Positions 4,078 to 47,790 of a DNA stretch of 64,000 nucleotides are shown here, in pieces. Under the pieces are notes generated by a model. The model was not told the DNA's origin, did no database searches, and saw only the letters and a list, made by a program, of their open reading frames with translations. The number at the start of each line of letters is the position of its first letter. Positions within the stretch are counted from its first letter, which is position 1. The DNA is from Neoechinorhynchus agilis (lineage: Eukaryota > Animalia > Acanthocephala), in assembly GCA_051530055.1 (NCBI GenBank), contig CM121342.1:14957480-15021479 (forward strand). The letters run 5' to 3'. The translations under genes and the position numbers were made by a program.

Positions 4078-6673
4078 TTATTCTTCTTTTCGTCTTTTAA
4101 GAAGTTCCACAAACAGTTTCGCCTTTCGTCTTCGTTCTTTTTGCTTCTTTAATCGCTCATCACAGGAAGCTTCAATTTCCAAATCCAGCTCTATGCCGTC
4201 ATTACTAGGCTGAAAGGGGTTTGAAAGAGGACTTGCACCATTTTGTAGTTTTCGCTTTGACGGATTTATTGTGAATTTGACTTGACTTTTCTGCATTGCA
4301 TCCTTCAAATTTTCCTGAATATACTATTTGGAGAACGCCTTTTACGTAAAAACCTTACCTCAGCCATTTGTTTCTTCATCACATAATATGGATTGTAAAT
4401 ATTTGTAGGATTCAGAAAATCGAATCTGCGATCAACCGATTGCATTGAAGCGATTTCTTCAAAGGAAGATCCTTTTCTAGCTACACAGTCAGCCAACTTA
4501 TCTAATACTTCAAGTACATCCGGAGGAGGCGGAATAATTTGTCTTGGAATCGGGGAAGTAGGGCAATTTTTCTTTGAGTTTTCATGAATTCGCCTGTTGA
4601 TTTCTCCAACGCTCTGAACCAAACGGGAATAGGGAGTTTCTACCGATATCAACTGATCCGTTTGATTCGAAGATGTCGACGGCGGCTGCACCTGTGACCT
4701 CGTCAGAATTGGATGTAGATATCCTTCGTTATCAGAATCATCTGACTCATCGTTTGGTCCGGTAACACATTCACTTACCTCTTGTCCTTTTGAATTAACT
4801 TTCAGATCCTTGGTCGATAATATCCAGCCCTCAGATAGGGCTCGCTTCATGTGTTGGTAGTAAGGAAAGAGAGCATGATCATATTTTAGAAAATCGAATT
4901 GTTCATTCTTGGCCTGTTTCGTCTTCACCAATATCTCCATTTGAGTGCCATGTTCAGTCACATATCGAGCGGTACACTCTATTATAGCAGCTCTGGAAAA
5001 CGATTAAAGTAATACATAGCGATTGGTATACAAAAAATTAAGAGCTGCTTATTAATTACTGTTTTAAGAGAAATAAATGGTTCTAATCCGATGGTTTTGC
5101 AGAGATGCCTTAAAGCGTGCTGTCGTTTTGTTGAGGGTTTAACAATCTTGTAAGGAAGACGAAGGCAATCTATTTCTTCATAAGGTTCCTCAACTACGGG
5201 TTTCTCATCTTTCAAATCAGGTAGTTCCTCAGTCCGATCTGGAAGCGGATCTGAGAAATTAAAGAAGACTTTCCAAAAGGAAATGTACGACAAATACCTC
5301 TTGGCATCTCGTCAAAGCCCAAAGCATTAAGGCTTGTTTGTGCTATGGACCTCTTATTTCCATCGACCTTCCATAAATGGTGACGAATATCAAACCTAAA
5401 GCGATTAATGTTTAAGACAACACAATAGGAAAAGTATTGATCAAAGGATCGACTAAAGCTCACTATCCGTCTTTTAATACCTTCAAGGTGAACATCTAGT
5501 TTTGTAGAAAAGTTATTAGGTTGGAAATTGATGACCGAACACTCGTGATAGAATTGTGGTGAATATACTACCGGTTTAAACGTACTTTATTTCTACGAAA
5601 TATTTCGAGGGGAATTCTTGCTTCGACGGTCATTGCTTAAGTTTGAAGATTGAATTGTTCATGTTTTTACATGGCGGAAAAATTAATAGAATTCTTTATA
5701 TCATAGGAAATTGTCATCAGGGTGAATTTGATTCGAGTTTTGTGATGTGGGACAAACGATGCAAGGATTGTCCAAAAGAATATCGCAACACAAACAGGCG
5801 TGCAGGGGGTTTGACGGTTCCTCAGCGATCTCCAATCATCCGGAGAAGGAAAAACATCGTATGGACTTCGGACGAGCATAAACAATACAGCCTGAGGCTA
5901 ATTTACGGAGGAGATTTGTAATAGAGGCAATAAACATCACAGGGAATGTAACCATGGAGGGTAAAAAAAGCGAATCACACGCTAGTACTTCCAAAAATTC
6001 AGGAAAAAACAAAATCAAAAAGTTAAAACGCCGCAGCTGGCACGTAGGTAATACACACGGCGCTTGGCGAACCCGCGGATCTACGCCTACAGTCCAATTC
6101 TGACTTTAGCTTAATTTGTAGATATAACTGAAGAGGTAAGCAAAAAGGTTACGAATATTTTGAATAAATGATGAACAGCAACAACAATCCGGAGGAAAAA
6201 CATCACCAAACTCGAATTAAAAGAATTCAATGATTCCGATATTTCGGAAGTATAATCCTGTACCTTCATCAAAGTTGCTTGTAACACGAGCTGGCACATT
6301 TAAAAACATACAAGTAAAAGATTGTGCCTCCGAAATATCGGAATTAATAAATTCTTTTAAATTTTCCGTCATGTGTCGCACATTAAAAAATACTTTTTAA
6401 CCGACAGAATATTCACGACAGTGTTGACTTAATCATTTCGAAGAATTTTCTCTCGATGATTGACTCGTGATAGCTTCGTATTTCTGCTGAATGGACTCAC
6501 CTGTCAATTAGCGTTTGACTTTGTGTTCCATTAAGACAAAACTGGTGGCTGATCAACAAGAGTTCTCCGTCACTGCATTCCGATCGTTCGAATAACTTGC
6601 ACTGATATCCGAACACGCAAAGGTTGTCTTTTTTAGGTTCCATATTTCCAGACTCTTTTGAAGTGTTGAGCAT
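4078..6673 (-). CDS. SFSWAP: Splicing factor suppressor of white-apricot homolog; exons 6673-6501, 5395-5298, 5250-5111, 4982-4359, 4314-4078
   Basis: N-terminal LCVFGYQCKLF..LIDR|FDIRHHL; SURP1 PSTKRQHAL|IECTARYVTEHGTQMEILVKTKQAKNEQFDFLKYDHALFPYY (human PPTAKMHAIIERTASFV..QFDFLRFDHYLNPYY); SURP2 VLDKLADCVARKG..FDFLNPTNIYNPYY. Introns 1, 2 and 4 are GT-AG (1105, 47, 44 nt); intron 3 is non-canonical. Confidence 0.9.
4983..5110 (-). other. Putative non-canonical TIR-bounded intron (AG..TA), 128 nt
   Basis: TTA|AGGCATCTCTGCAAAACCAT...ATCGTTTTCCAGAGCTGCTA-TA|ATA GAG; inverted repeat 15/20; removal restores SURP1. Confidence 0.75.
5668..6375. mobile_element. MITE family B arms inside SFSWAP intron 1 (inner hairpin ~6215-6365)
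   Basis: ATGGCGGAAAA..AGAATT at 5670, TTAAAAGAATT..TTCCGATATTTCGG at 6216, inverse CCGAAATATCGGAATTAATAAATTCTTTTAAATTTTCCGTCAT at 6330-6373. Confidence 0.65.
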
Positions 6674-7428
6674 TTGAGCAACCTACACGAATCGAGCATT
6701 GAGTCTAAGTAAGTGAGCGTAGCGATCGATAAAAAACCTAATCAGGAACCCTGAAATCATCTTTGAAAAGGATTACAACGCAATTTGCGAGGCTGAGAAG
6801 AAAGTATAATCGACAACACGAGTGCTCGACTTTGAGTGTTCAAGCTACTTTTTTCGCAGCAAATGTGTTTCCGGAAGAATCTATAAGTAAGCGTAGATAT
6901 ACCTTTAAACATATACTTTATTTGGTGATAGAGATCGATTGATTAGTTTCCTTTCAAAATATTTATCCCATCTCGTAGGAATTCTTTAGGTTACTTGTAA
7001 GTTATTTCAACTGAGTTGAAAAAAGTAACCTGAAGAAGGTGGATTAAATATTGTGAAAGAAAACTAATCAATTGATCTCTATTTTCTCAATCACCAAAGA
7101 ATTGTCTAGAAATGGATTTAGAGGTCCGTGTGTGAAGAGCTCTTTGTTCAAAAATTGACGATTTCGTGCATCTTGACTCCTTAGATTGCGTAGGGTTTGT
7201 AAATGTTTCTATTTCGCAACCCAAAAATCTCAAACTAAAGGCTGAGCATCCTTTGTTTTAAGAAAAATGATATAGTTTCGGAATTCTCTAATGTGAAAAC
7301 GTAGTTGTTTGAACCGTCATTTTTAAGCTTTTTTTGGAACATAGGCGAGGGTGAAGCGTATCAGATCGAGGTCTGAGAGGTCAAATATCAGGGGTTTTTG
7401 ATTTTTTTATAGATTATTTTCGATTCAA

Positions 7429-8825
7429 ATGTCACCTGCAAATGAAAAAAAAGAAATGGCTCTGCTTCCTGCGAAGGCTACTTCTGACCTTAAAGAAACA
7501 GATAAATCGCAAGATTTGAACATTGACGATTTGTTCGCTATGGACCCCATTATTGCAGTGCATAGAGCAATACGAATACTTGGACAAGATACGGCGCAAG
7601 TGGTCTCCTTAGAAGACAAATTGGAGATTCTCTTGATCTTGAATGAATACCTGGAGGATACGAAGTTGGCACGTGAATTCATTAGATTGGCACGGCATGG
7701 TATTGTGTGGAGTTTACTAGAAGCAAAAATTGCTGAAAAGATAAATTCTAAATGCTAATCTAGAATATAAAAGGCGCTAATTGAATACTCAGGGAAATGT
7801 CTTTTTAAAGATTATTTTAAGATGAAAAATGAAATGTAGCCTGAATTACACTTTCGGTGAGAATAATCCCGGTCATTACATATTTTATTTATTCGAAATA
7901 TTTCGCGAGGTATCATCGCCTCTTCAGTCATTGTTTCGCAAGTGACGCTGAAGTGAAAAACTTGCGAAACAATAACTGAAGAGGCGAGGATACCTCGAGA
8001 AATATTTCGAATAAATAAAATATATAATGACCGGGATTATTCTCACCGAAAGTGTAATTTTATTATCCCGGAGGACTTTCTATCGATGGTTAAGCAGTAA
8101 TAGCCAGAATGTTACAATATTGATTGGGTTGATTTTCAAACCTCGCAAATAACCATTCTTTTTAAACAATTTTTGCCAAAACCAAGGACCAGGATGAGAA
8201 GGTAAAGGTTCTTGCTTGCCTTCTTATTATTTCCGTATCGCAAAACTGCCCGGAAGGTCAAGAGATGTTCTTGCGATCAAAAGAAAGTCACAAAACTGAT
8301 TTTATCCATCGTTTATCTCAATTGATAAACGACCATCAGACGAGCAACGATGTTAAATCAAAGGCTCTGACAGCTCTCCGATGGCTTCTCGATCATAACG
8401 ATAACGCGATTTGTGAGTTTATGAACAACAGTGACAATGTGAGAACTGTTTGTCGTTCGGTCGATTCCAAAAGTCAAGATTTGCATTCTAAAGCAGCGAG
8501 ACTTATTTGCGTTTTGGGTTCAAAATATGCTGAAGCTTTAGTGGAAGCTGGAATGTTACCTTCTTTAGTTAATAACTATGTATCGGAACAATGGCATAGA
8601 GATAAACAAGATTTGATAGAGGCGATTGGCCTTCTCGTTGGAAATGACTTAGTAACAAATCAAGCTGCAGTTGATTATTGCTTAAAGAAAAAGGTTGCTG
8701 AGAAGATCCGGGAAACCCAGGAACGAGTACCTGATAGGGAAGCCGCACAAGAGGAATTGGAATCGGGCAATAAACTAATTGAACTACTTGAACGTAAAAA
8801 AGATTGTACTGTCACTAAAGAATAG
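7429..8825 (+). CDS. HSPBP1: HSPBP1/Fes1-like Hsp70 nucleotide-exchange factor (armadillo-like); exons 7429-7718 and 8183-8825
   Basis: KLEILLILNEYLEDTKLAREFIRL..SLL|KDQDEKVKVLACLLIISVSQNCPEGQE..VKSKALTALRWLL aligns with human ALELLADLCENMDNAADFCQL..RWRAAQLIGTCSQN..VRVKALFAISCLV. Confidence 0.7.
7719..8182 (+). other. Putative non-canonical TIR-bounded intron (AG..AC), 464 nt, containing a nested MITE
   Basis: CT|AGAAGCAAAAATTGCTGAAAAGA...TCTTTTTAAACAATTTTTGCCAAA-AC|C AAG; perfect 10-bp IR core GCAAAAATTG/CAATTTTTGC; exon-1 frame stops at 7756-7758. Confidence 0.6.
7845..8095. mobile_element. MITE family A: ~215-nt near-perfect palindrome plus one-sided tail
   Basis: AATTACACTTTCGGTGAGAATAATCCCGGTCATTA...TTGCGAAACAATAACTGAAGAGGCGA...CCGGGATTATTCTCACCGAAAGTGTAATT; related copy at 57311-57550. 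Confidence 0.9.
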
Positions 8826-9007: not shown

Positions 9008-9620
9008 CAGTCAATGGTCGCAAACACTCAGTTTGGGATTCACTCCTGGTAGCGAGAATTCATAACTCTTTAATTTCATATTCTAGTGACTTAGCAAACC
9101 GAATTCGATTGAAAGCAGCCTCGACTAGAGAATCGGGTGCTTGGGTAGGTGCTGTCCCAATCACTTCTGCAAGTACAATGGAGCCATCGGAATGCAACGG
9201 TCTCGTCTGTCGGCAATCATGCGGGAGGTACCCACGGCACGCCGAAGTGAACGCAATTCTTAGTCGTTCCCTGAATACTGTGAATGTGTCCAATATCCTA
9301 GAGCCGAGCAATCTATGCCACCACGTTCATAGACACGCTGGCAGCGAGCAACATAAAATTCGCCGTTTTTTAACCGGAGGGGGAGCAGATGCCGCCGCAG
9401 AGGATCGCAAAGAGAGCAAATACCGGGACCTGGGTCGAAATCACTATTTCTTCCCCTTTGGATTCGGGGCACTCAGGTCGTTTAGTATTGATGCACACGA
9501 CCTGTTCAATCAATTGTCAAAGAGACTGAGACGATTTGCTGATCATCCGAGGGCAGAAGCATTCCTCCTGCGAAAATAAAACTGGCTCTGCACCAGGGGA
9601 AAGCTATATGCGCTCATTCG
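9008..9620 (+). mobile_element. CRE-clade non-LTR fragment (RLE end), internally deleted
   Basis: ASTRESGAWVGAVP..GLVCRQSCGRYPRHAEVNAILSRSL..EPSNLC..AAEDRKESKYRDL. Confidence 0.85.
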
Positions 9621-9959
9621 ACCATTAAACCAGGACTGCAGCATGGTGATCCAGAGTGATAGCGTGAATGATTGTCAACTCTTCTTGTAGTTGTATCGCT
9701 AAATAACGTCGTAAATAACTTGCAAGCATATCTCAGATACACATTGACATTCGCCGAACCAACTCAATTTCGCATGGCAACTTCTATAATGGCCAAATCA
9801 AAATTCTATTGTTCATTGAGCGTCAATTGCTCTGCCCAATTGTGACGACAATTAAAGTACCATTAACGCTGAAGAAAGATTGCTCATCACGTCCTTTGAT
9901 GCGCGGTTTCTGTTCTGTTAGAGCATCGCAGATCGCGCCCCTACAATCAGAATCGAACT

Positions 9960-10860
9960 CAACTACCTTCCAAAACTAAAAAACTACAAGCCAGCTCCTC
10001 CACAGTCCGATAAACCGACATTACCCATAACCTAAACCGAGACAATCGAACCCTTGCCAATTGGACTCAACTCTCCGAATCTATCCACTCCAATTCCAAC
10101 AAAAAAATCAGTAAAAACTCTCCCAACACTCCCCACTTTCTTTGATTACATCCGCCTTTCATCCTTACCCCAATCAATCGATTCCTTGCTAACCAATATT
10201 CCTAAACAATCATCGCAGCAGGCCTACAGCAACCAACAATATCTCTCAGGTATCCCCGAAATCACGGCCTTATTTAATTAAGATCTTTACAAACATTATA
10301 TTCATCACTTCAACATCGTCTTTCGACAACACTGCCGAATTCTTCGCTCTGTTTCCTTCCTTGGTCTCCTTCCAGCGCATCTCTAACAAAAACCTTAACG
10401 AATCCCGTCATCGTCTACTCAAAATCACTTTACATCCGCCAAACACCTCATCTTCCTTCGCAACCGCTTCGCACTTGTCAATTCCTCCCTACGATGCGGA
10501 ATATACCCAGAGCGCTCACTTCAAGCTTTGATATTCGTCTATGCATAACCTTCTTTTCTCCCGTTCCAATAACTTAATACTCGCTAAAACCTACCCTCAG
10601 AACTCAACTCTAAATTTTTAGACACCTCCGAAAATTCCTACCGTACGTTGGTTGAACTAAACATTAGCGCGAACTCAATAGCCGCTCAGAAACTTATCCA
10701 TCAAACGCTTCCAATAGTCAACTCTCGCAAATGCCTCCATTCCTTCCACTAACATAAGAAGTCTTCTACCTAAACTAGATCCTCGTTTGCTATTAGCCTC
10801 CCCCTCAATCTCAAGTCGCCCCTCCGATCAACCACTTCTTCCCTTCCCTATCAATCGTGT
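9960..10860 (+). mobile_element. Decayed LINE fragment, homologous to 18780-19570
   Basis: Shared blocks CATCGCAGCAGGCCTACA.CAACCAACAATATC, CTCAGGTATCCCCGAAATC and AAAACCTAC.CTCAGAACTC; the 19 kb copy continues into an APE domain. Confidence 0.6.
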
Positions 10861-10879
10861 CTCCTCTGTTCGTATCCTT

Positions 10880-11760
10880 GGTAGAATGGTGCCAGCAGAC
10901 AAGCGCTAACCATGTTCCCGCGAATGGCCTCAAACAGTCGATCTCGGACAGATCTCTCGTCGCGAGCGCTCACAGCTCTCTACTTTCAGGTCCTCGCGAT
11001 GGGGTCGTCCGAGCTTGATTGTTGGCAGTTTCGACACGAGAATCGGGGCCGTGGTTGGAGGCTGTTAATCTGACATCTGTGAGAAATCTCCTCACTGATG
11101 AGGTAACGAGGATCGCAGTGTTCTTAAAACTTGGTCTCCCGATATGCACGCCCCATCGCTGTCGATGTGGGTCTTTGGTTGATGCTTTCGGGCGACACGG
11201 TCTCGTTTGCCGAAAGTCAGGAGGAAGGTTCTCACGCCATTCTGAGATCAACAGCGTAATTTCTCGGGCGTTGAGAACGGCGAACTTACCAACATTTTGG
11301 AACCCGCCCATCTTTGTCGACTAGACGGTCGTCGACCTGATGGAATTTCGGTCTTTCCTTGGCGGGAGGGCGAATGCCCTCTCTGGGACGCCACGCGTGT
11401 GGACACCCTCGCAGTAATCAACATTCCCTACTCTCTCGAAATCGCTGGAGGTTCAGCCAATGCAGCGGAAGGTATGAAGGTACGAAAATGTAGGGATTTA
11501 GAGAAGGTCCACTATTTTGTCCCCTTCGCGGTAAAGACGTATGGAGTGCTTGGCAGTTGGGCACTCACTCTGCTCCAGGATCTCTCGAAGAAATTGAGAG
11601 AAACGACCGGCGACGCACGAGCAGGTGTATTCCTGCGACAAAATATCTCGCGCGCAGTACAACGAATCAATGCTGCTAGCGTGATAGCGACAGCCGAGGA
11701 AGGAGAGAAGCTCCAATTTTGCGGGCGGTGGTGGTTGCACGTTTTGTACTTTATTATGTT
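10880..11760 (+). mobile_element. CRE-clade non-LTR 3' fragment
   Basis: AVSTRESGPWL..CRCGSLVDAFGRHGLVCRK..RHSEIN..EPAHLCRLDGRRPDGISVFPW..LWDATRVDTLA; 3' UTR shared with ~59860. Confidence 0.9.
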
Positions 11761-12520
11761 ATGACTAAAAAAATGTTTCCTTAAAAAAATCTAAAATGGG
11801 ACAAGAACCTATTAACTTCGCTGCATTAAGGGTTTATTAAACACTATATCTTAAGCGTCTCCGATTAGTTGGAATGTCATCCAAAGATCTTAAATACTTT
11901 TGTATGTTCGCCATCCTACCAACGCTCACCTACGCATACCCATTTTTTTGTTGTTTTTCTTCTAATCGATTCCAAAAACTTAATACCTTTTCACAAGAGG
12001 TGCGCTATAGCCTCCGAACACATACCCTTAAAAAGACATCTCGCTCTAATCGTTCAAAAGCACTCAAAGCGCCTTCATTCTCTTCCTTCTCGATTTCTAC
12101 CACACATTTCTCCTTTTACTCACACTTACAAGACTCGTTGTCCCAACATTTTCCATCATTCAATTCCTCGTTGAAATCTCTAACCTCCAATCTTTCTTTT
12201 TTACTGTTCAATCCTCCAAATGCGAATTAATTCGGAGGAAAGAGCGGAAAACAACGATCAACAACTAACGTTTCGGAATTGCAAAGATAGAACAATAAAA
12301 ACCCATCCAAACTTACAATTTCCACTAGATATCTAAGGTCCATTGTTCGGTTGCATCTATTTTTCCAAATAAAAAGTGATATTATATATATCATTAAATT
12401 TGCAAAATCGAATACTTGAAAGCGACCAATTTCTAAAACCTAGAGTTTATCAAGGTGCCTTCCTTCGTTCGAACTTTCAAACGAACCTCTTATGGTATTT
12501 TTTCAATTGTTGTTATTTAA

Positions 12521-14143: not shown

Positions 14144-16921
14144 TCAACCATCTTTGCACGATCGATACGGTTGGGCGGCATTGGATCCTTCAATACTTGC
14201 CTTCGTTTCAGCCAGTAGTTTTTCTTTTTGTGAGACGACCCCTTGAATTGTTTCCAACCTGGCTCGATTATTGTCAAATGCCTGCATCAACTCTGCTTTA
14301 TATTTCGTCATTAGATCCTTGACATCTAAACCGACTAGCGAATCGGCACTCATATTTTCCAATTGTTCCTCTGTCAGTTCTCCGTTTTCCGGAAGTAGTG
14401 ATGAAAGTAAGGTTTTGACCGATTTGCTCAGCTTAATAATCGTATCAACTTGTACTTCCCGACCGTACAGTATCGCGGACTTTTTTCCGTAAGATGGCGG
14501 TCGATAATCATCGTCTTCATTCTGGTGAACTCGCGATTTTCGACGAGGCAGCCGCGGTTTCTTTTCGACTGGTCTTCCACTATCTTCACTCGATGAAGTA
14601 GACTGCGAAGTAGACGACTCAATTAGAAATGGTTGCCTCTTATAGGATTTCTTCAATATTGATCGTGGTTTTGATTGAGCGGTGTGATCAGCGACCTTCG
14701 ATTTTTCTACGTCTCCGTCTAAGAATCGAACTGATCGATTCAATCCGCCTTTCGCGCAGTTCTCGTCCTCGTTATTACCGAGATCTTCAACGCTTTTAGA
14801 TTTTAAGAGATTGATATCTTTTGGAACGGTCCCTTTTTGAATTTCGGGCAGCCTTTCCGGCAAATCACAATCATTTTGGTCTGGGTCCGCGTTCATGCTG
14901 CATTCCCAATCGCTGGGAACCTCAACGGAAGACGCAGGAGTTCCATAAGCATACACCCTCCACTTCAGACATTTGTCACATTGAGCAACTACGTTCATGC
15001 CGAAATTTCGTTTACGGACGAATTTAGGTTCATCACTTGGTGCAATAACATCCGACCATTCTTTATTTGCTGGATATCCACATCGTAACCATAGTTCGAC
15101 TTCGTCTTTTCCACGGTACTTTGTATCGAAAACATAGACGCTCATTGTCCGCATTATATTACGAAGTAAATATCGGTATTCGAGGTTGTTGGCAAATCCT
15201 TGTTTGTTGTGGGTTGGTTCAATTACATCCTGGGGGATATTGATCACGCCAACGATTCCAGGTACGTTAAGATCAATGTCTTTTTCGTACATTGTAATCA
15301 ATCGATTGCGGTTGTAAATGAAGACACCGTCACGACGACGATTGTGAATGTTAATTCCATATGTCGGCAGATTAAAACGTTGAAAGTTGAAAAATAAGCG
15401 TGCAAAGATCTCTAAGACTAAATCAACATTTGATGAAAAATACATTTTTAGTGAATTCAAGGGCTCCTAAAAAATAAGACATTACTTCCTCTTGAAGTGC
15501 ATTGGACTCGCCAGATTACGGCTATTGATAATGAACCCTTAAGTCAATCAAAAATGATCGCTAAATGGACTAATAATAAAATATTGGTTATTTTGCTTTT
15601 TTAATCAGTCTCTTATAAATTCAGGACTTCGTAAATTCTTAATTTCTTATGTACTCATAACTAATTTCTAAAACAAAAGTGGATGATTGGATGTACAACC
15701 CTAGTTGGCCACGCAAAAATGATTTGTTATACATTACACTAGCGACTAAAAACGACGCTGAAATACATCGGGTTTTTAAATCCACCGATCTTAGGTGAAC
15801 TTGAGAGTTTTTGGAATTCTTAGTGACCTTCTCTTCATGTCGACTTCATCTTTCCGTTTGGCTAACGTTGCTCGTTGCGATACTAGCATCATATTCCATT
15901 TTGTGTACTCGCTGCGAACTTGAGCATTAACAAACGCTTTTGGTCTCATGTCAACCAATTTGCTTTCCGTTTCTCGAACTCTATCTTCCATATGATTATA
16001 AGCTTCGATTGCAGCCTCAAGTTGTTTCTCAGTTTTTGACTTAAAGCGAACAGAGGAAAAAGTATACTCTCGTGGACGCAGCAAAGTATTAACAAATCTG
16101 ACATTTTGAACCTTTTTGCCTTGAATGTACACTTTCATTCTTGGCTCATAATAGAGAATAGAAACGTATTTACGAAGCGAATACCTCTCTGGGTATAAAA
16201 CCAGATCCGCCTCTGCCTCGGTTATATTCTCATTCGTTAACATAATATCATACGGATCGGTCTTCACATCAATCTCCGTTTTACCGGAATCAAGGAGGGC
16301 CAAGTTGAACACTACTATCAAGGTACCCGAAGAACCGGTTATTTTGTCAAACCGGTCTTTAATAATGTCCAAATTCTTGAAAGGACTATATTTGAAAATA
16401 ACTGTCAACTCAGTATTGTGCATATTTCGAGTTTTTCCTGCCTTCAAAATCGGCTGGAATGTATTGACGTCAAAGACAGGGATCGGAACTACAACTTCTT
16501 CAATCCCTTCAGATTCATGAAATGTCCTTGACAACATTAGACATGTCAACTCATTGTTTCGTTTTGTGAACAGCATCATGTCCTTGCCGAGTCTCATCGA
16601 TCCAGATTTAAGACCGTTACCATACTGTCCTATTATAGTGCCATCATCACTAACGGAGCACTTCTCCGACCGTCCGAACGAAATTACATTTACGACTTCA
16701 TCCATGGTCATGCCGTACCCGTTATCCAGAAAGCAAAGTGAAATTCCACCACGAACGTCTTTACACACTTCGGTAAAGATGTACAAACAACTTGATTTTG
16801 CATCCAGTGAATTGTCAATAAGCTCAGCAAATGCACCGAAAATAAACTCATGGGTTATGGAGTTTGTGTGAAGATAGTCAAATGTCACTTGAGCTTTGTG
16901 AAGCCGGTCATAGCACGCCAT
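14144..16921 (-). CDS. MORC2: MORC family GHKL ATPase with zf-CW; exons 16921-15792 and 15359-14144
   Basis: AQVTFDYLHTNSITHEFIFGAFAELIDNSLDA..IGQYGNGLKSGSMRLGKD; junction LRIPKTLKFT|YGINIHNRRRDGVFIYNRNRLI collinear with human [32 protein letters not shown]; CW domain QCDKCLKWR..WECSMN. Confidence 0.92.
15360..15791 (-). other. Putative non-canonical TIR-bounded intron (AG..TA), 432 nt
   Basis: ACC TA|AGATCGGTGGATTTAAAAAC...GTTTTAATCTGCCGACA-TA|T GGA; TA duplicated; the unspliced frame reads TAA at the junction. Confidence 0.8.
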
Positions 16922-17639: not shown

Positions 17640-18700
17640 AACAACATATAACCATGTACCACTTACGGAAGCTTGAACAATTAAGACCAAGAACATTCGA
17701 AGAGCGCGATTATTTTGTACATAGATCAAAACACACCTTTTCCTCAAGGGAACTTAATTTGCTGAACAAGGGAACGGACTATATTATGAACCATCAGATT
17801 CGATCTACTAAAATCTGATGTGATACAGAGCTTCTTATAAACTCACATCCAGATCTGATGATTTCAATAGTGGCCTATGGCAGGAAAGCTCGTAGTCAGA
17901 ACGTTCACAACGATAATAACGAGATGGTACTTGTGAAGTCCCCGAAGGAATAGCCAGCAATAGTGATTTGCAAATCAGACAAAGGACGTGCTTTAGGAGC
18001 TGTGGATATGGAAGGTTATCAAAACGGGGCTTTGGATCTTAACTCGGACAAATTTGAGAGGCTGGCAAGAGATCCCACGAGACGTAGAGAAACTAAATTT
18101 AACGGTTTCCTCAGGAATTTGTTGAACCGGTCTGTGATCGGTCCTCAATTTTACAACATGACGCGATCATCATCGGCTAAATGTGCGTTTCTCTATCTTC
18201 TACAGAAGATACACAAACCCATCCCGCAGTGCCCTCTAATTATAGCCAGTAATATGTCTTTCAATCATCGCCTATCCAAAAGGATCAATGCTTTATTGTC
18301 AATCGTTCTGCACAAGGCAAAGATAGCAAGCACTTCACCGTATCGCAAGGAGAACCTACCATGGGGACCACCATACTGATCAAATCATCAACCGATGAGG
18401 CATAAAATCTCGGCTGTCACTTCGTACTTCCGAAGAGCTTCTCTTATCTCATCTAATCGATTTGCATGGAGTAAGGATAGGGAAAGGATAGTACAGGAGC
18501 TGAAAATGAGGGGAGACAGCAACTACCATCCGCACAACAACAAATCTTCTGCAATACCTGCATGCTTCGAAAGAGTGCACTTCATCGATGATGACACGAA
18601 TCAAATGATTTACTCCATTATGAGCAAGAAGGCTGGAATTCGTCTATACAATACTAAGGGAATCGCTCTCAGAATCACATTCAAGAGGAAGGCATCATTC
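17640..18700 (+). mobile_element. Penelope-like RT N-terminal fragment, deleted and frameshifted
   Basis: KSDKGRALGAVD..LARDPT..FLYLLQKIHKPIPQCPLII matches the PLE pattern ADKG..DPT..LYGLPKIHK..PLRPI. Confidence 0.75.
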
Positions 18701-18749
18701 GTTCCCAAACTTCTCCAACCTCCAAAAACTCCCCACCTAACTCTCTTAA

Positions 18750-20200: not shown

Positions 20201-20399
20201 TGGTATAAGAGGGATCAACACATTTTCTCATTTACCAAATTGGTCTTGCGTAATCCCTCTTCACACAGAAAATCTATTTTTCACCCGAAGCCCTCGGAGG
20301 CTATTCTTTCTCTAACTAATATACTCTCCTCTTGCATGACCAATTGGAAACAAAGAATTCTGAGAGATATGACTCGTTGGATGTCATTTGAAAGCTCGG

Positions 20400-28600: not shown

Positions 28601-28639
28601 GCAAACAACAACATTTCTTTGAACTTTTCTCTCATTTGA

Positions 28640-35899: not shown

Positions 35900-38800
35900 A
35901 TTTTATAATTCGTATAAAAAAGAAGCTTTGAAAACTTTCACGATTGAAGCAATTACTCTAAGCTACTTTAAAGATTTTCTTCGCCCAAAAAAGTTACAAA
36001 ACTCCAGAGATTTTCAAATAAAGAAATTACTCCAAACCAAATTTCGTACAATGATATCGTTCTTTGCGACAGATGGTAAAAAAGTGTTTTGTGAGTTACT
36101 TCATTCTATGGGGGTGGAATTCCAGGATATATCAAGGAAGGTTAACTTTCTAATGTATAACCCGCCGTTAAATCTAACTAAGGAGGATTTTGATGAAATT
36201 GAACGGGAAAAGGGTTTCGCTCCAAACAAATATTTATAGGTGAAGGTTAGTCAGATCCCATTTGCTATTCCTTGTTCGGCGTCGGTGGATGTCGCATGTA
36301 ATCTGGTTGGTAGATCGATGGGGCTTATTTCGTTCTGGGTAAGGTTCTCAGAAATTAAGGAAGGGAATATTCATGATTACATTTTAACCCAATGTGGGAA
36401 GTGCAGCCAGTAGGGACACATATCCTATCAGTGCGACCGGGAAGATAAATGTGTGCTCTGCGCAGGAAATCATAGGAAAGAAAATTTCAAAAATAAAAAA
36501 AATAAATGTGCCAACTGTGGAGGAGCGCACCCGGCCTATAAGCGATTCTGCCCCTCAGCGGTTGAATATTTTGAATCGGCAAGGAATATTCAGGCTTCAG
36601 CTAAGAGGAATAACTTCTCTCAAAAGAGAGATAGATGCTTCAAAATGAGGAATCAATATCAAATATCGGACAGATATCAAAATGACACTGTAGTTCAAGC
36701 GAAAAATACTCTTAGAAATAGAAAAGCTAAGAGCGGAAAAACAACTTCTAAAAGAAATGTTAGAGAACACGAACGAACTTAAAGGAAAGTTTAAGCACCA
36801 CTAAGAAATTTGACAGCTGTTTGGAAGGAAAGTCGGGGATGAACAAGGAAAACAGTTCGTGTCAGGTAAGAGAAAGGGTAAGAGGGGAATAGGATATCCC
36901 AAAATGGACTCTCGGCCCAAACGAATCAATAGAAATAGTTTTAGCGATAAAAACGATAAAACCGAATGACAGCAACTATAAATATCGTTACATTTAATGC
37001 GTCGAGAGCGGCCCAACTAACGAGAGCAACTCTTAAACAATTACTGAAATTTGACTTGAAATGTATCTTTTTTCAGGAGACGGGTGATAAACCTATAATG
37101 AATTGCGGCGCAAACTTTGAGTGTTTTATTTTGAAGCCACTTTTCAATCAAAACAGTAACAATATAGGCTTTTCGGGAGGACTCCAAACGTTTATACATA
37201 AAGACCTGAAGTCCCAAATGTTATTTCAAATAAAGTTAGCGGAGTACGCAATTCAGTTCATTAAGATTTAAAATCTATTGTTAGAAAACAGTTCAGATCT
37301 TATTATATGCATTATATACATTTCCCATAGGAAAGTAGGACTTTTTATTAAGAAAACGATGTCTTGGTTTCTCTTTTAAGCTTCATATATGGTTGCCGCA
37401 GATTTTAACTCTAACGGACTAAGCAGTTTCCGCTCGCATTTTGAGGACTACAATATATTTTCAACAGAGGAACCCTCTTTTCACCATTACACACGAAGGT
37501 CGCATTCATATCTAGATGCGCTGGTAGTAAAAAGGGACATTCCTATAATTTTTTAAGGCCGTTAAACAAACTCAAGTGCAGCCGGTTATGGGGTATGATT
37601 TCATTGTGTTCTCCTCCGTCCTAAAACGGTGAGTAATTTCAATCAATCCATAAAATCTAGTTTGTGGAACGCTAATGTTGTCTCCCTGAATGATTTTAAT
37701 ACGATTTTATCTGAGGCGGCTTCAACGTGTTGGAAAAAGAAGGTAATGGTGAGAAAGCATATAAGGTGCAAAGAAGCAAATAGGTTGATGAGGCAGGTTA
37801 TTATTGCGGAACTTCATCAAGATATGGAATATGCTAAAGGTCTACGGGGAGAATTTTATAGGCAGCTTTATTGGGATCAAGTTGGTGAGGACAAAAAGAG
37901 ATTAGAAGGAGTCGTAGGTTTGTCGAAACAATCCTGGGACCTAGTCCTTCAAAGGAAATTTGTTGATTGGATGCTTAAGGCGGCGAAATGGATAGGTGAA
38001 GTCTCTTATCCTGTGGTAGTAAAACATATTTTATCTAATCACATTTTTAAGATATCTTTTTCGCCATCTGGTGAGTTTCGTGATTGTGAAAAATGGAATT
38101 GGGGACTTTCCAATAACGATTGCTCGGTTTATTGGAGGTATGCTGCTTCCAAAGCCCATAATTCACACGCATGTTCGCCCAAAACCTTCAACGCGGTTGA
38201 CAAGGAGAATCAAGAATTGTTTTTAACTAAATTTCGGAGACGAATTGATTTCCATGATCTGTTAAATATTAATATTGTTAAAAAAATTACTCTTCCAAAA
38301 GATAAGAAGAAAGTGATCAGTTCCCCCTCGGATATCAGAATGATATCGATTCAAAACCCCTTAATATCTTTTTTAGAGAAGGTAGTTAATAGAAATCGTT
38401 CGGAAATTCTGAACAAGAAAAAATGCTTTCTTAATTACTTTCACGGTTTTATCGCAGGCAGAGGGGTACACTCTCTCCTGTCAGATCTATATGAAATGAA
38501 TAATAAATATGGGTTTACGAACAAAGTTTTGTTGCAACTGGATCTCAATAAGGCTTTCGATTCATAGATCGTAAGGTGATCTATGAGGCGCTAAAGTATT
38601 TTAAAGTACCGAAAAATATTCAAGATAAAATTAAAGCCTTGTTAGAGTAAAAGTCCTATTATTTCGACCTTGATCCTGGTCAAACAACGTCCTTCTCTTG
38701 AGTGGGTGTTCCCCAAGGGTCACCTTTATCTCCCACGCTGTTTGTTTTAACTTTTGTATTCTTATTTCTTTTATAATCCCTCTCAATGATTCAGCTGGCT

Positions 38801-39631: not shown

Positions 39632-41632
39632 TCATTTTTCTAAGTACCATAATTTACTTTTCCGCCGTTCCAAATAACCATATCGCGTGTTAAATATACT
39701 TTGAATATTTGTGTTACTAACATCAAGATGAGTTAGTGTTGAGCTTTTCATCAAAGGACGAATATATAGATGTCGAATCGGATTGTTTGAGATATTCAAT
39801 AACCTGATGTTTTGTAGGTGAATAAAGGCGTTGTACGGCAGTTCGTAAAGTTCATTATAAGCAAGATTTAGGAAAATTAAATTATTGAGACTGAAAAACA
39901 CGTCCAAGGCATCGATGTCCCTCAACCGATTGTGAGCGAGATCGAGTATTTTCAGTGAGTTGCAATTAATGAACGAATACGGAGTAATTTCCCAAATTTT
40001 ATTAAATTGAAGGCAAAGAAATTGGAGGCGCGGAAACGAGGTAAAGTCCTCATTGTCAATAGTCGATATATCATTTTGACTAATATCCAGGGAGATCCTC
40101 TCTTGCCCTTTGATGTATTTGTCAACGTACCGAATTCTTGTGAGGTTTTTCTTTGTAACCACAGTCACTTTCGTCGATTTCTTTTTATCACTGAATAGAA
40201 AATAGGTTTCTAGGGCTTCTCGAGTAGGAACTGGAATAAATTCTGAGAGGAGAACAAACTCCATGTAAGTGTAATTGATCCTCGCTTTATTCGGAAAGAT
40301 AAATGTTAGAGGATTATCGCTCACAATTAAGTGCCAAAATAAGTTTGGAGGCAAGTTAATTATATCCAAGTTTCGGGGTTGATTTGAGGACAGATTGAAA
40401 TGATCATGAAATTCAACGTCACTAAATAAATTCGGAGGTAAACTCACAATGCCATTTTGAGAGATGGAGAAACGTCTTAGTAGAATGTTGTTCTTAAGGA
40501 TGTTACCGTCTATGCTGGATAGCTTGTTTCCATCGAGAAACAAGTCGGTGAGGTACCTTAGCAAAGAAAATGCATTTTCGTGGATATACTCAATAATATT
40601 AAGTGAGAGATTCAATCGTTCTAATCTTCTCCACGTTTGAAAATCTGATTTGTAAATAATCATGATTTGGTTTTGGGATAATGACAAAGATTTCACCGAA
40701 GTGTCTGTTGCATTATTTCCAGTAGGAACTGACTCCAATCTTCCATCCAAAATGCCGATATGTGCAAGTCGTGAAATCCACTTTAAATTGCTCAGATTCA
40801 AATATAGAGTTGTTCCACCGCGTACTACAAATTCCCGTAAATTGCAAGAACTAAATTTTTCTTGGAAGATGTATTCTAACTCGGCATCCCACGAAATTTC
40901 CAGTACTCTTAATTTTCTAAGTAGGCCAATACGTTTTAAATCATTTCTTTTCAATATATTACCATGGATTCGAATTTCATTCCATTGTAGATTTTCCCAG
41001 AAGTCATTCTTCGGCAAAGTAAGGCTTTGAATATAGTTGTAAGAAAGATCAATGCGCCTTAATGTTTTCATATTTTCCATTACAATAAGATTTCGATGGT
41101 CCAATTTGTTATGGGCAAGAATCAAAGATTGCAATCGCGGTAGATGTCTACTGAGAATCCCATTGATCGAGACCAAAGAGTTAAATGTCAAGTCAAGATT
41201 AGTTAAATAATAAAATCCTTCAAATGCGCCCTTTTCAATCTCGTCAAATCCAGCATTTAAAATCCTTAGACTTTTAGCGTGCTTAAATTTGCTTATAATT
41301 TGTTTCGTTAATTTTCGGTTCTGTCCAAAATTATTTTTGCACTGTATCTCAACATATTGAGCATCTTGATAGTTTTCGTCAACTATATCCTTCATTTGTT
41401 GAAGGGGCACGCCGTTGATTATAATTGCAGGTTGAGGAAGGGGTATCCCCATATCTCGCCTGTCTTTAAACGGAAGTGAACAAAGTTCACCGAATGGATT
41501 TGTTGCATTATTAGGTAAACCAACAAATTTGACTATGGGAACAGAATTCGTATGTCCATTCGAATATCGATCTCCACGGGTTACTGTTGAGACAGTAAAT
41601 ATGAATAGAAGGACTCTAGGATTTTTGAGCAT
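39632..41632 (-). CDS. Secreted LRR protein, paralog 2 (666 aa)
   Basis: Near-identical to paralog 1 over the central region; intact ORF. Confidence 0.85.
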   Translation of the reverse strand: MLKNPRVLLFIFTVSTVTRGDRYSNGHTNSVPIVKFVGLPNNATNPFGELCSLPFKDRRDMGIPLPQPAIIINGVPLQQMKDIVDENYQDAQYVEIQCKNNFGQNRKLTKQIISKFKHAKSLRILNAGFDEIEKGAFEGFYYLTNLDLTFNSLVSINGILSRHLPRLQSLILAHNKLDHRNLIVMENMKTLRRIDLSYNYIQSLTLPKNDFWENLQWNEIRIHGNILKRNDLKRIGLLRKLRVLEISWDAELEYIFQEKFSSCNLREFVVRGGTTLYLNLSNLKWISRLAHIGILDGRLESVPTGNNATDTSVKSLSLSQNQIMIIYKSDFQTWRRLERLNLSLNIIEYIHENAFSLLRYLTDLFLDGNKLSSIDGNILKNNILLRRFSISQNGIVSLPPNLFSDVEFHDHFNLSSNQPRNLDIINLPPNLFWHLIVSDNPLTFIFPNKARINYTYMEFVLLSEFIPVPTREALETYFLFSDKKKSTKVTVVTKKNLTRIRYVDKYIKGQERISLDISQNDISTIDNEDFTSFPRLQFLCLQFNKIWEITPYSFINCNSLKILDLAHNRLRDIDALDVFFSLNNLIFLNLAYNELYELPYNAFIHLQNIRLLNISNNPIRHLYIRPLMKSSTLTHLDVSNTNIQSIFNTRYGYLERRKSKLWYLEK

Positions 41633-43100: not shown

Positions 43101-43704
43101 CTAATTTCAAGGTTTGGCCTTTTATCACACGGCTAATAATTTTTGGGCACACAGCCCACCGACCGAAAGGGGACGAAATACCGCTGAAGGGAGGAAACTC
43201 ACCGATGAGTCCCGCCTCCTGGAGGTATCTGAGGATCCGGAGGAAAGTACAAACTCGTGCCGGATGGTTCAGTGCATTGAGTAATTGAATTACTACTCTG
43301 AACCAGGTCGGTGGGGTTGTGTGCCTAAAAAAAATTAACAGCCGCGTTATAAAAAGGCCACACATTGATATAAGTTACCGGCTGGCCAATTTTTCATAAA
43401 AATAGTTATAATTAATCATATCAAGAAGATCCTTCGGGATGTAAACATTGGAAGGTCGCGAGGAAACCCAGCCCAATCAGGCATTGTTAAAAATAATTCC
43501 TATTACTTTTTTTAGAAATATATTTGAATCCCCGCTTCTGCTTCAAAAAATACATTTAACTTTTATGTTGTTTTAGTTGTTAATTTGCCTAAAACCTAAA
43601 GCAGTTTTATTTGTTGATTAAAGCTGAATTGTGATTGGTCATTTTGCCGCCAGTGCATTTCGTTCTAGAGAGTCCTAATCTTGTCCATAAGATTTTTAAC
43701 GAAA

Positions 43705-45382
43705 ATGTCAGTTGTGCTGGAGACAACAATCGGTTGTGTAACAATTGATCTTTACTACCGGGAGCGTCCTATATGCACGTTCAACTTTCTGAAGCTTTGC
43801 GAACGTGGATGCTATTATCTGAGCCGTTTTCATAGTCTACAGCCGAATTTTATAGTCCAAACTGGCCGCCCGTTTAACCCTAAAAATGCCGGTGAAGACG
43901 AAACCGGGAAATCCGTGTTCGGAATGCTTGATCAGGAGTACGGTGACTTCTTTCCAATTGAACGCTCCTCCATCCTAAAACATAATTCTATTGGTACCGT
44001 ATCGATGGTTAACGATGGAACTGATCGTCTAGGATCGCAGTTTCTCATAACCCTCTCGCCGAAATGCGATTACCTCGATAAAAGACACTGTGTTTTTGGA
44101 ATTGTTTCTGAGGATCCTGATAATGTTATTGCCAAATTCAATAACACAGTGCATTTCAATTCAAAGACTAATGAACCTATTCAGGATGTTCGGATTCTTT
44201 ATACTGTTGTGCTTTATGATCCGTTTGCCGAAACTGATTCAATTTGGTTGGATTTATTTTGGTATTTAATGTCGGATCATGGACGGTGTAGTAGCAGAGC
44301 AGCCAATGTTTCATAAACGTTTCGCTCTTAAACAAGTTTTAGTAGATTTAATTTCCGGTTCCTCGCTCCTTTTTACTTTTATATTGGAAAGTTGCAATGA
44401 TATAATCTGTTTGCATCTGGCGTAAAAATTAAAAGGATTTATTGGTTCCGATATTTTAGCGGCACAATCTTATTAATCTAATCGACTAGAATTTACAACT
44501 TTGATAAAGGCACAAGATTGCGCCGCCGAAATATCGGAATCAATAAATACTTTTAATTTTTACATTAGATGCAAACATGAACATTTCAATCTTCAAACAA
44601 TGATATAATCAATAAGAAGGTTAAGTTTTGTAATTCATCATTTAGTGAAAAATAAAGATGCAAGTCTACATCTTAGACTTCCTTTTAATCCGATCGGTTG
44701 AATAAATGAAGACAAACAGGCGAGACTACCTCGCCCTTCACACTTTTCTTATCTGAAAAACATTGCCTCGGAATTAACCGCACTAGATTCGTTAAGTTTT
44801 ACTGTTGATGATATGATATCGCATCTAAAGCAATTATCCCGAAAGGGATGTGCACTTGGTGTTGACGAGATTATCAATGAAACTAGTGGTCTTGCCCCTG
44901 ACGAAATAGAAGAGCTGAAGGAGGAACGGGAGGCTCGTGCGAGAGCTCACGTCCTCGAAATGGTTGGTGATTTGCCAAGGGCTGATATTGTTCCTCCCGA
45001 AAACATATTGTTTGTTTGTCGATTGAATCCAGTGACAACTGAAGAGGATTTAAGGATTATCTTTAATCGGTTTGGGACAATAATCACTTGTGATATTGTC
45101 CGAGATCAGAAGACCGGTGACTCTCTATGTTATGCTTTTGTTGAATTTAGTAAAAAGGAAGAGTGTGAAATGGCCTAAGTCAAAAGTCCTTTTTGTAGTA
45201 TGGGAGATCTCTTTATTTACAACAAGGACGTTTTGCCTTATATGAAAATGGATAATGTGTTAATCGACGATCGTCGTATACATGTGGATTTTTGTCAATC
45301 TGTAGCCAGATACAACTTTGAGAGAAAACGGAGACCTCGGAGAGACGAGTATGTGTGTATCAAACGTTCTAGAGGCGATTAA
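43705..45382 (+). CDS. PPIL4: Cyclophilin-RRM protein; exons 43705-~44241, ~44720-45177, 45241-45382
   Basis: [31 protein letters not shown]; [32 protein letters not shown]|[23 protein letters not shown] (human [27 protein letters not shown]). Confidence 0.95.
44418..44568. mobile_element. MITE family B inside PPIL4 intron 1
   Basis: AAAAATTAAAAGGATTTATTGGTTCCGATATTTTAGCGGCACAATCT ... AGATTGCGCCGCCGAAATATCGGAATCAATAAATACTTTTAATTTTT. Confidence 0.8.
45178..45240 (+). other. Putative non-canonical foldback intron (AG..TA), 63 nt
   Basis: GCC TA|AGTCAAAAGTCCTTTTTGTA...TACAACAAGGACGTTTTGCCT-TA|T ATG AAA; ~18/21 IR with exact AG/CT termini and a TA duplication. Confidence 0.85.
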
Positions 45383-46025
45383 GTCTTGTGACCATTTCGC
45401 AGTTGTTCCTGAAGGAATCTGAACATTTGTGTCATCGGTGTGACATCAAAGATTTGGCTTATTTTGTTAAACTTTTCGCAGCAGTCGTCACTTCTTCAGA
45501 TATTTCCTTAAAAACATATCATACGGCTGTAATTTCGAGACTTTTTCGGAATAATTTTAGTTCAAATAGTGACGTCACGCTAACTAGATTATTGGTTGAA
45601 TGATTATTCGATCTAAATAAAATTCGCTAATAGAACCCAGGAGTAAAACAGCGATTAAAACTCCATTATTTCTACATAAAATACTGATTTCTACGGTGTG
45701 ATTTGTGAACCTATATCTCTTTTTTAAATGATGCAATGAAATCATTTTTGCTTATTAGGTCTTACAGGACCTTGAATGATTAAATTTTCGATGCAAAAGG
45801 TCAATGCTTTAATTTACGAATTTCGCAGCATGACATTTTTCACTTTATAGAGAGCGTTCAAATACCAAATTCCTCGTCATTGCACAATCTAAATCTTTCT
45901 TAGACGCAGATCACCTGCATGATTTACTCATTGTCGTTTAGAGAATTTCTTAGGCGGAAATGGTGTTCAAACTTCATCTTGGAATATTGTTTAAAATGAT
46001 CAACTACGACTGATCAATGTTTTAG

Positions 46026-47790
46026 ATGTATGTAGATTGCAACTTGTCAACGAAATTGGGCGTCGAAACGGATGAAGAGAGAAAATGCGAATTGTATTCT
46101 TTAACATACGGCTTCGATTTTGATTGTGTGAACTTGAACACGCAAAGCCGTCATAGATCCATGTTCAATGTTTTCGATATGGACATCAATGATTGCATGA
46201 AAGATTTTATACCCAAAGAGATGCGAAAGTTACGCAGAATCTATTCTGAAGCGCTCGTCGATTCCTCAACTTTAAATATCGTTGCCAAAATTCTTCTCAA
46301 GGAAGTCAGCGAAAAGCCGGTGGTATTTTTATTTCAAGAAAACGCCTGTGATTCCGCGCTTGTCTTTCTCGAAGCCCTTCTCAAATTTCTGAGATGCGAT
46401 AACTCAAATATTGATGGAAAATTTCTTTTTATTAGGAAAAACGACTTAAGAGATTGTCTAGTACGTTATTGTCTACAGGATCTGAGCATCCACCCAGTTG
46501 CGTTAACATTGAATCGGCTTGTAAGACCGACTCGACAATGCTGTTTGGCTATAGGTCCTAAAGAAAAAATGAGTTCAAAATTAATTTGCAATCGTTCGGA
46601 ACTTGTTTGCCAACTATATAAGGAGTATACGGTGTCGTGGTTCCGCTTATCCATTTTTCGCGGTGATCGATGGAATTCTGCGAACATGCGAGAAGCAATC
46701 ATGGCATTGGTTCCGCGCTTATCTTTTGTCTCATTGGGTTTCGATCTGGAGAGCTTTGCAGTGACCGATATAGATACGAAAGTTGAGCTAAAGGAATGTT
46801 TTCGACGGGTTTGGTATGGCGGTGGATATCCATTAGTTTCACTTCTTAGCAGAACGAACTACAACTGTGCCTTGTTTCTTGTCGCCGTGTTTGCCGTGAC
46901 CAAGTGCGACATTAGTATCTAAAGTGTTGCGCAAAATTTTTGGCTTGTGAATTGAAGATTTAATCGAAAAGAAGTTTTCCGCTTAATTTATAGTTTTTGT
47001 GTAGAAACAAATTCTTGCAATTTAATAAATTTTAGGGATATCATTAGCACGCAGTCTGGTGCACCAATGCAATTCCACAAACTTTTCTAGCGAAATTTTT
47101 CAGACTTTCTAATAATGCGCGCAATACTTACTTAATCTCATCATTAATCCATCTTTGAAAGCTGATCGCGATATCATCGAGCCATTAATCGACAATCTTA
47201 GTAAATTGCTCATTGTTGATGATCCAGCTAATGAATTCGTCGATAAAACTGGAAGGGTTTTGGAGAACATGGGTATAGTGAATGTGGTTGATAATAATGA
47301 GAAAATGGGATATCCGCTGATTCTTGACGAAATAGACGATGGTGTGGGTAAATCTAAGTCAGGATCTGTCGTATATGAAATCGATTTGAGTGAAAGTGAC
47401 GATTATGCATACGCTCTACTGCTTGTTAATACGATTTTACCTCTAATCGAGGCGCAGAGCTTCATTCTAAAAAGACTCGGAACATATAAGGAGAACGATC
47501 TTGTTTCCTTTAAGGATCTCATCGATATATCAGACATATCTGCTAGATTCCAAGAAGCAGTCTCCAAAGAGCTACTGAGCTTCAGTCTCGACTTTCAACT
47601 TTTCCGAAATGTTGACTGTCCTTTAAGTGCAATTCGGCTGTTCAATCATTCCTCAAACATCGAAGAGGATGTAGTATCAATCAATAAGGAATCTGCGTAT
47701 TTCAAAAACCTTGAATCGCAAGCAAAGAATTGTTTGATACACACAAGGTATCTGAATACCTTCTTAAGTGAACAAAAAGTAAAATCTTAA
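46026..47790 (+). CDS. Unidentified protein, probably two exons (46026-~46920 and ~47132-47790)
   Basis: Two long ORFs; the second lacks an early ATG; they are separated by a ~211-nt IR-bounded insert; no domain recognised. Confidence 0.55.

Follow-up and report, generated by a model that had tools for sequence, protein, structure and literature searches.

In this study, three introns without GT-AG ends were found in protein-coding genes of the acanthocephalan Neoechinorhynchus agilis, on a 64,000-nt stretch of its genome (GenBank assembly GCA_051530055.1, contig CM121342.1, positions 14,957,480 to 15,021,479) which is called the window hereafter. These introns, I1 and I2 in PPIL4 and I3 in an orphan gene, are removed from RNA exactly at non-canonical junctions and the DNA is left intact. 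In total six inserts were located in five genes, namely SFSWAP, an HSPBP1/SIL1-like gene, MORC2, PPIL4 (with two) and the orphan gene (Table 1), and in all six the ends are paired in the full-length minimum-energy fold. The hairpin-closed non-GT-AG inserts are very probably a genuine second class of intron, which is transcribed and then cut exactly from the RNA.

Removal of three introns from RNA

Of the words in 43600-47800, a share of about 0.8 is present in public RNA contig sets of N. agilis, and contigs of three RNA runs (X2, X3 and X4) together with the raw whole-genome DNA run X8 were aligned to 43550-48200. The source of the DNA libraries of this species was whole worms, pooled or single, and mRNA-seq was carried out on 74 individuals (PMC12690905). 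The junctions of the RNA-defined introns I1, I2 and I3 were set by RNA without reference to structure. The joint of I1 (44232 to 44708) has no ambiguous letters, is present in three RNA runs at a depth of 73-103 and is placed after DPFAE in the protein. A contig retaining I1 (44203-44737) was found at a depth of 5-12, about one tenth of the spliced form, and its presence means that the PPIL4 locus itself is transcribed. The joint of I2 (45175 to 45239, TA..CT) skips 63 nt and is present in three RNA runs at a depth of 82-146, the retained form being absent. It has two ambiguous letters, the repeated TA, within which the cut position is free (TA-AG...CT-TA at 45176-45240). Sliding thus gives TA/AA/AG..CT/TT/TA as the possible ends, and an AG..TA reading is among them. 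I2 lies between EMA and MKMDNVL; removal of 63 nt yields EMA-Y-MKMDN, the RNA joint is identical to this, and no in-frame canonical splice alternative was found by enumeration within +/-90 nt. The first-pass annotation of this DNA, made from the letters alone, had proposed this insert and it is confirmed here, along with a second one of 475 nt (AC..AT, 44233-44707, no TA repeat) which it had not listed.

In the orphan gene, the joint of I3 (46915 to 47133, TA..CT) skips 217 nt, again with the two letters of a TA ambiguous, and was seen in three RNA runs at a depth of 164-274. The insert lies at 46916-47132 with sliding up to +2, the possible ends are TA/AT/TC..CT/TT/TA and a start with AG is impossible. 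The junction had earlier been placed at an inner TA (46920/47129); the RNA uses the outer TA pair, 4-5 nt farther out, and only this one keeps the frame. With the RNA joints applied, the open reading frame (ORF) of PPIL4 is intact at 379 aa, the translation of its first exon being aligned with human PPIL4 residues 1-169. Similarly, the joined frame of the orphan gene (46026-47862) forms an intact ORF of 515 aa, for which Pfam and Atlas searches gave no match.

The pieces of the RNA contigs beside the joints show 0 differences from the window over 468+423 and 890+730 nt, and no nearby GT-AG sites are used by the contigs at I1-I3. At a depth of about 11-17x, the DNA run gave 0 reads containing one of the three joints; normal depth was seen across the inserts, and I2 and I3 are covered as deeply as their flanks. 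RNA depth in the intergenic interval 45734-45889 is 0, which implies that the RNA libraries contain little DNA. The joints in RNA and the absence of joint reads from DNA together refute DNA elimination, dead gene copies and the use of nearby GT-AG sites for I1-I3. The first two had been offered as alternatives by the first-pass annotation, which had also named three observations to look for; at I1-I3 the contigs lack the inserts, no nearby GT-AG sites are used and insert-free DNA was not seen. Its claim that introns bounded by inverted repeats and lacking GT-AG are removed from RNA is thus upheld by three joints in three RNA runs.

Somatic DNA elimination resembling that of ciliate internal eliminated sequences, in which the RNA would merely mirror insert-free DNA, shares with these inserts the TA-bounded ends; the eliminated sequences of Paramecium are bounded by TA. 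As X8 is whole-body DNA with the depth and lack of joint reads given above, and an unspliced I1 contig exists, this explanation is highly improbable. The other proposal, in which these loci are dead and insert-free paralogs elsewhere are the source of the spliced-looking RNA, has no supporting point that could be found. A paralog at least 95% identical would give joint reads in the DNA; none was seen. The RNA pieces match the window without a difference and the I1-retaining contig shows transcription of the locus, and this proposal is left with a negligible probability as well.

Two known intron classes were rejected for I1-I3. The U12-type AT-AC class does not fit the 5' ends ACTGAT, TAAGTC/AAGTCA and TATCTA/ATCTAA, which are not ATATCC with AT..AC ends. 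The canonical U2-type GT-AG/GC-AG class does not fit RNA joints of AC..AT, TA..CT(+2) and TA..CT(+2), and no sliding within the ambiguous letters yields GT-AG ends.

RNA contigs of this region also carry a non-genomic 5' leader ending in ...ACTCGAATATTTAAAAACTTACAAGCA, with a variant ...AAAAACTTGCAAACA. At PPIL4 the X2 and X4 contigs span 43669-44232 and are preceded by the leader, and the X3 contig begins at 43724. Three genes receive the leader at a canonical AG acceptor (43669, 46026 and, on the minus strand, 47868), which indicates spliced-leader trans-splicing; no description of a spliced leader for Acanthocephala was found in the literature searched. Leader-like copies in the window, near-copies matching 25 of 27 letters, lie at 59932-59958 (+), 57602-57616 (-) and 9714-9728 (+), three matches against 0.08 expected by chance, and they continue with ATGATTGATAAGGTGAGG and not directly with GT. 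With Rfam models at gathering thresholds, no snRNA or spliced-leader RNA family was found in the window.

Paired ends and predicted members of the class

End pairing was expressed as the duplex energy of the first with the last 25 nt of an insert, and the control was a set of 3000 segments of the same lengths drawn at random from the window. The end duplexes of the six inserts range from -15.0 to -17.7 kcal/mol (I1 -16.7, I2 -17.2, I3 -17.7, SFSWAP -15.6 and MORC2 -15.0) against -6.5 +/- 3.2 kcal/mol for the random segments, and each insert is within the top 0.4-1.6% of these; mismatched end partners give a mean of -5.75 kcal/mol. With an added anchoring criterion (outermost pair no more than 6 nt from both ends, symmetric), 0.3-0.4% of random segments equal each RNA-defined intron. 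The junction of the HSPBP1-like insert was picked by its stem and its pairing is therefore no independent test.

At equal window size, the six inserts give -13.3 to -17.7 kcal/mol and five canonical introns +0.4 to -4.6 kcal/mol. The latter are three introns of SFSWAP (+0.4 to -3.7) and the introns 47710-47759 and 47794-47856 of the neighbouring minus-strand gene (-1.9 and -4.6). The canonical introns have GTAAG, GTGAG or GTAT at the 5' end and a pyrimidine-rich tract before the final AG, signals which are absent from the others; the pyrimidine fraction before the 3' junction is 0.44-0.50 in I1-I3 compared with 0.56-0.78 in canonical introns. Two sharply distinct intron classes are thus present by end pairing. 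The earlier observations that reading frames are broken by inserts with pairing ends, that ordinary GT-AG introns coexist with them and that the repeat sequences differ between inserts all stand. No cross-matches were obtained among the six inserts, and in the searches, which covered the 64-kb window, a second copy of any terminus was not found; the stems of I1, I2 and I3 start with ATTCAA, AAG/CAAAAG and AAGTGTTG, respectively.

The stem is separated from the junctions by 0-5 nt, a distance that is equal on the two sides within 1 nt. In I1 the closing stem begins 4 nt from each end (4/4), in I2 the spacers are 0/0 and in I3 the junctions are 4-5 nt away from the stem (5/4). When the cut is set between T and A of an ambiguous TA, I1-I3 all start with A and end with T, as do the MORC2 insert and the 125-nt model of the SFSWAP insert, and the downstream exon opens with a purine after each of I1-I3 (G, A and A). 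A constant 5' AG under selection, with a mainly AG..TA boundary, had been claimed earlier. It does not hold for the RNA junctions, since I1 starts unambiguously with AC and, of I1-I3, AG is possible in I2 alone. A motif of the bulge-helix-bulge or IRE1 type, judged by eye only, was rejected; the junctions are directly opposed at the stem base and unstaggered.

I1 and the HSPBP1-like insert are the two longest and contain nested foldback repeats (44408-44577 and 7844-8059, respectively) with copies elsewhere in the window, their closing stems being unique. The repeat nested in the HSPBP1-like insert consists of two units in inverted orientation, which resemble the leader-like sequence with its downstream part (AAAAACTTGCGAAACAATAACTGAAGAGGCGAGG...), with sites at 7844-8059, 57293-57620 and 59940-60049, and its sequence suggests a mobile foldback family derived from a gene like that of a spliced-leader RNA. 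A second foldback family, resembling miniature inverted-repeat transposable elements (MITEs) and having the core ...GCGCCGCCGAAATATCGGAATCAATAAATAC..., was found at 44408-44577, 6215-6371, 47788-47873, 48658-48753, 55920-55984 and 5641-5693. One copy is within I1 and another within a canonical intron of the minus-strand gene, and the DNA depth there is 3-4x that of the flanks.

The remaining three inserts are predicted members. In SFSWAP, the frame ...KPSTKRQHAL stops within the insert and ...IIECTARYVTEHG resumes beyond it; the exon after the insert begins with IIECTARYV and is aligned from residue 30 of the human SURP1 structure 2e60_A (PDB). The exon translation is 100% identical to the NCBI 'hypothetical protein ACOME3_008229' of N. 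agilis. Joins after removal of 125 nt or 128 nt are free of stops, and the 125-nt removal fits the stem geometry. The 128-nt removal would fit the human sequence near SURP1 (...MHAIIERTA). In MORC2, the piece ending in ...PKTLKFT is aligned with human residues 6-368 and the piece starting with YGINIHN from residue 370, so that removal of 432 nt gives ...KTLKFT/YGINI with human residues 368/369/370 matched and no gap; the Pfam profile Morc6_S5 is split at positions 59 and 69 by the insert. The first-pass annotation had stated that removal of an insert with one TA restores the protein in SFSWAP, MORC2 and PPIL4. This is true of the 63-nt insert of PPIL4, by RNA, and of MORC2, by collinearity with human, and not of SFSWAP, in which the corresponding 126-nt removal hits stop codons.

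The HSPBP1-like insert has a perfect 10-bp closing stem (7723-7732 with 8167-8176) and paired ends at 7723-7741 and 8158-8176, which fall inside what the first-pass annotation had supposed to be exon. The identity of this gene is weak, with a SIL1 Pfam match of E=3.7e-4, below the curated cutoff, and PDB searches with the two pieces did not find HSPBP1. Removal of 455 nt would give a spacing equal to that of human HSPBP1, both the junction and the comparison being inferences. Regarding SFSWAP and PPIL4, a search for transcript-derived proteins across the junctions gave only truncated annotation models of N. agilis, the collection seemingly being without the 2025 RNA runs, and acanthocephalan orthologs were not recognised in the same search.

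A number of points weigh against uniting all six inserts in one class of introns. The RNA proof is confined to three introns, and the contigs are without strand information and have rare isoforms dropped. The spacing from stem to junction varies from 0 to 5 nt, and a 2-nt TA repeat is found at I2, I3 and the MORC2 insert and is absent at I1, one of the RNA-defined introns. SFSWAP has the alternatives of 128 nt (5113..4986) and of a weak GC-AG pair (5120..4993) in frame, and the HSPBP1-like gene has a weak in-frame GC-AG alternative of 464 nt. Moreover, in four RNA runs all words (100%) sampled from 15150-16000, an interval that includes the MORC2 insert, are present, which means that unspliced RNA exists. 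The MORC2 insert is a predicted intron and its splicing may be inefficient.

Alternatively, some inserts may be outside the class, SFSWAP and the HSPBP1-like gene being spliced through their weak GC-AG pairs and the MORC2 insert being retained to give a truncated protein. This is unlikely, as the GC donors are poor (CA/GCACGC and GAA/GCAAAA, compared with GTAAG/GTGAG in the local canonical introns), stems typical of the class are present in all three inserts and the collinearity of MORC2 with human is exact. The ranking of RNA runs by their share of words at MORC2 is biased to unspliced RNA and says nothing on absence of the spliced form. In long inserts many dinucleotide pairs are in frame, and a missing canonical alternative is an argument for I2 only.

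Table 1. Positions in the window of exons, inserts and canonical introns
Feature	Position	Strand	Description and basis
PPIL4 exon 1	43669..44232	+	starts at spliced-leader acceptor TTCTAG/A; RNA contigs
Intron I1 (PPIL4)	44233..44707	+	475 nt, AC..AT, junction repeat absent; RNA joint
PPIL4 exon 2 (linker and RRM)	44708..45175	+	RNA contigs; aligned with human PPIL4 residues 190-297
Intron I2 (PPIL4)	45176..45240	+	63 nt, TA AGTCAAAAGTCC...GGACGTTTTGCCT TA; RNA joint
PPIL4 exon 3	45241..45661	+	RNA contigs
Orphan gene exon 1	46026..46915	+	spliced-leader acceptor TTTTAG/ATG at start; RNA contigs with leader in front
Intron I3 (orphan gene)	46916..47134	+	217 nt, TA TCTAAAGTGTTGCGC...GCGCAATACTTACT TA; RNA joint
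Orphan gene exon 2	47135..47862	+	RNA contigs
SFSWAP insert, SURP1 domain	4986..5110	-	predicted non-canonical intron, 125 nt, AG..CT
MORC2 insert, S5 domain	15361..15792	-	predicted intron, 432 nt, TA AGATCGG...CCGACA TA
HSPBP1/SIL1-like insert	7722..8176	+	predicted intron, about 452-455 nt
Canonical GT-AG intron, SFSWAP	4315..4358	-	44 nt; NCBI gene model P0001 and sequence reading
Two further canonical introns, SFSWAP	5251-5297, 5396-6500	-	NCBI gene model and sequence reading
Canonical GT-AG introns, neighbouring gene	47710-47759, 47794-47856	-	50 nt and 63 nt; RNA joints and loose ends

Origin, mechanism and comparison with known systems

In the explanation we favour, the first and last 10-20 nt of the intron would pair and the stem would set the two junctions opposite each other, 0-5 nt outside it. 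The junction would often be T/A on both sides, a repeated TA making the exact cut ambiguous, and the splice sites would be defined by the stem and not by the terminal dinucleotide. The SFSWAP, MORC2 and HSPBP1-like inserts are provisionally assigned to the same class, and the introns may have descended from transposons with terminal inverted repeats (TIRs) which inserted at TA.

An origin from TA-inserting transposons is plausible for I2, I3 and the MORC2 insert, with no multi-copy family found for any terminus in the window. The likeness to Tc1/mariner-type MITEs lies in the TA flanks, the imperfect TIRs of 10-20 bp and the restoration of the host sequence when the element and one TA are removed (I2, I3 and MORC2). 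The TA abuts the inverted repeat in I2 and MORC2, and in I3 the used TA is 4-5 nt outside it. The inserts differ from such elements in that their termini form no multi-copy family in the window and in that I1 and the HSPBP1-like insert are without a TA repeat. The MITE derivation proposed by the first-pass annotation is so far unsupported: TA flanks are present in two of the three RNA-defined introns and in MORC2, but further copies of the termini were not found in the window, and DNA depth over I2 and I3 is that of a single copy.

Two kinds of machinery would be roughly equally likely, namely a spliceosome with relaxed ends helped by end pairing, as in Fritillaria, and a separate structure-guided pathway, as suspected in Euglena. 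In the larvacean Fritillaria borealis, the only animal precedent, non-GT-AG introns are frequent and occupy species-specific positions, and their TIRs and target-site duplications (TSDs) point to MITEs (PMC11282704, PMC13326754); their removal needs the U2 spliceosome, and the U2AF paralogs are divergent (PMC13326754). The present case is similar in having an animal host and non-GT-AG introns with terminal inverted repeats. It differs in that AG-AC/AG-AT ends with a preceding exonic TAC are dominant in Fritillaria, whereas here AG is a possible start in only one of I1-I3.

The nonconventional introns of euglenids have paired ends, TSD-like repeats and pyrimidine/purine junctions, and their machinery is unknown (PMC11282704, PMC12501133); the code in Euglena is N3-CAG ... 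CTG-N5-6/R (PMC12501133). Introns of Euglena gracilis and E. agilis resemble the present ones in their non-GT-AG borders, in ends that pair near the junctions and in sharing genes with conventional introns (PMC11282704, PMC12501133). The TSD-like repeats, the pyrimidine/purine junction pattern and the purine at the start of the downstream exon are also found here. On the other hand, euglenids have the CAG/CTG code with unequal spacers, whereas here no stem motif is shared and the spacers are equal within 1 nt, and the host here is an animal. The introners of Amoebophrya have an inverted repeat of 8-20 nt, a direct repeat across the boundary and no shared dinucleotide, and an origin from TIR transposons is suspected (PMC7789003). 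Here likewise a terminal inverted repeat is present in six of six inserts, the direct repeat TA in I2, I3 and MORC2 (none in I1), and no dinucleotide is shared. The direct repeat is 3-5 nt in Amoebophrya but 2 nt (TA) or absent here, and repeat families are found there whereas the termini here are unique in the window, with I2 and I3 at single-copy depth.

A pathway independent of the spliceosome, in which the terminal stem is recognised and cut at its base, as is suspected for the euglenid nonconventional introns, which leave as full-length circles once the conventional introns are out, is quite possible, though we hold it to be somewhat short of an even chance. It would suit the variable terminal dinucleotides, the strong and intron-specific stems, the lack of pyrimidine enrichment before the 3' junction of I1-I3 and the purine as first downstream exon base, as in the Euglena code (PMC12501133). 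Against it, the sole animal case tested, Fritillaria, needs the U2 spliceosome (PMC13326754), and the CAG/CTG motif of Euglena with its spacing of 3 versus 5-6 nt is absent here. No back-joint was listed for the RNA runs, whose contigs cannot show absence. The wider proposition is that an animal has a second, structure-guided pathway of RNA excision which does not depend on recognising GT-AG and may not need the spliceosome, and which would let TA-inserting hairpin transposons settle harmlessly in coding exons of essential genes. We regard this as tentative and rather doubtful.

RNA-confirmed hairpin-closed non-GT-AG introns are not reported for Acanthocephala in the literature searched, and no papers linking acanthocephalans or rotifers with non-canonical introns were found there; the word 'intron' was not found in the genome and transcriptome paper of N. 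agilis (PMC12690905). The favoured reading would make this a second, independent animal lineage (Spiralia: Acanthocephala) with common paired-end non-canonical introns in housekeeping genes, efficiently removed. To our knowledge, the GT-AG rule is near-universal in animals with the exception of one tunicate lineage. The present introns would offer a tractable case of splice sites set by structure and of the conversion of transposons to introns. If the second pathway were true, it would be a convergent metazoan counterpart of the euglenid system in a small chromosome-level genome with 74 public RNA-seq libraries.

Further, gene finders that assume GT-AG truncate such genes; the NCBI models of N. 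agilis end at the insert in PPIL4 (121 aa versus 379 aa) and in SFSWAP (242 aa). The Eukaryota BUSCO score of N. agilis is 58.4% for the genome and 71.0% for the transcriptome (PMC12690905), and in P. laevis the BUSCO values are 61% and 75.5% (PMC7310846). The lower genome score in both sequenced acanthocephalans fits with gene finders failing on such introns, and part of the 'gene loss' reported for these parasites may be an annotation artefact.

Other features of the window

In the interval 47918-48073 the DNA depth is about 180x on each strand, compared with about 7x nearby, and many reads are inverted or back-joined; the interval is a very high-copy repeat, possibly a satellite or a palindromic element. 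Leucine-rich-repeat proteins (LRR_8, E=8e-38) are encoded by three nearly identical ORFs without introns, 666-670 aa long (25154-27166, 39632-41632 and 53194-55194, all on the minus strand and about 14 kb apart). Their arrangement points to a segment that was triplicated recently. Between the genes, many ORF fragments of reverse-transcriptase/LINE-like type are present at 9100-11800, 17900-24200, 28000-35300 and 36400-38600.

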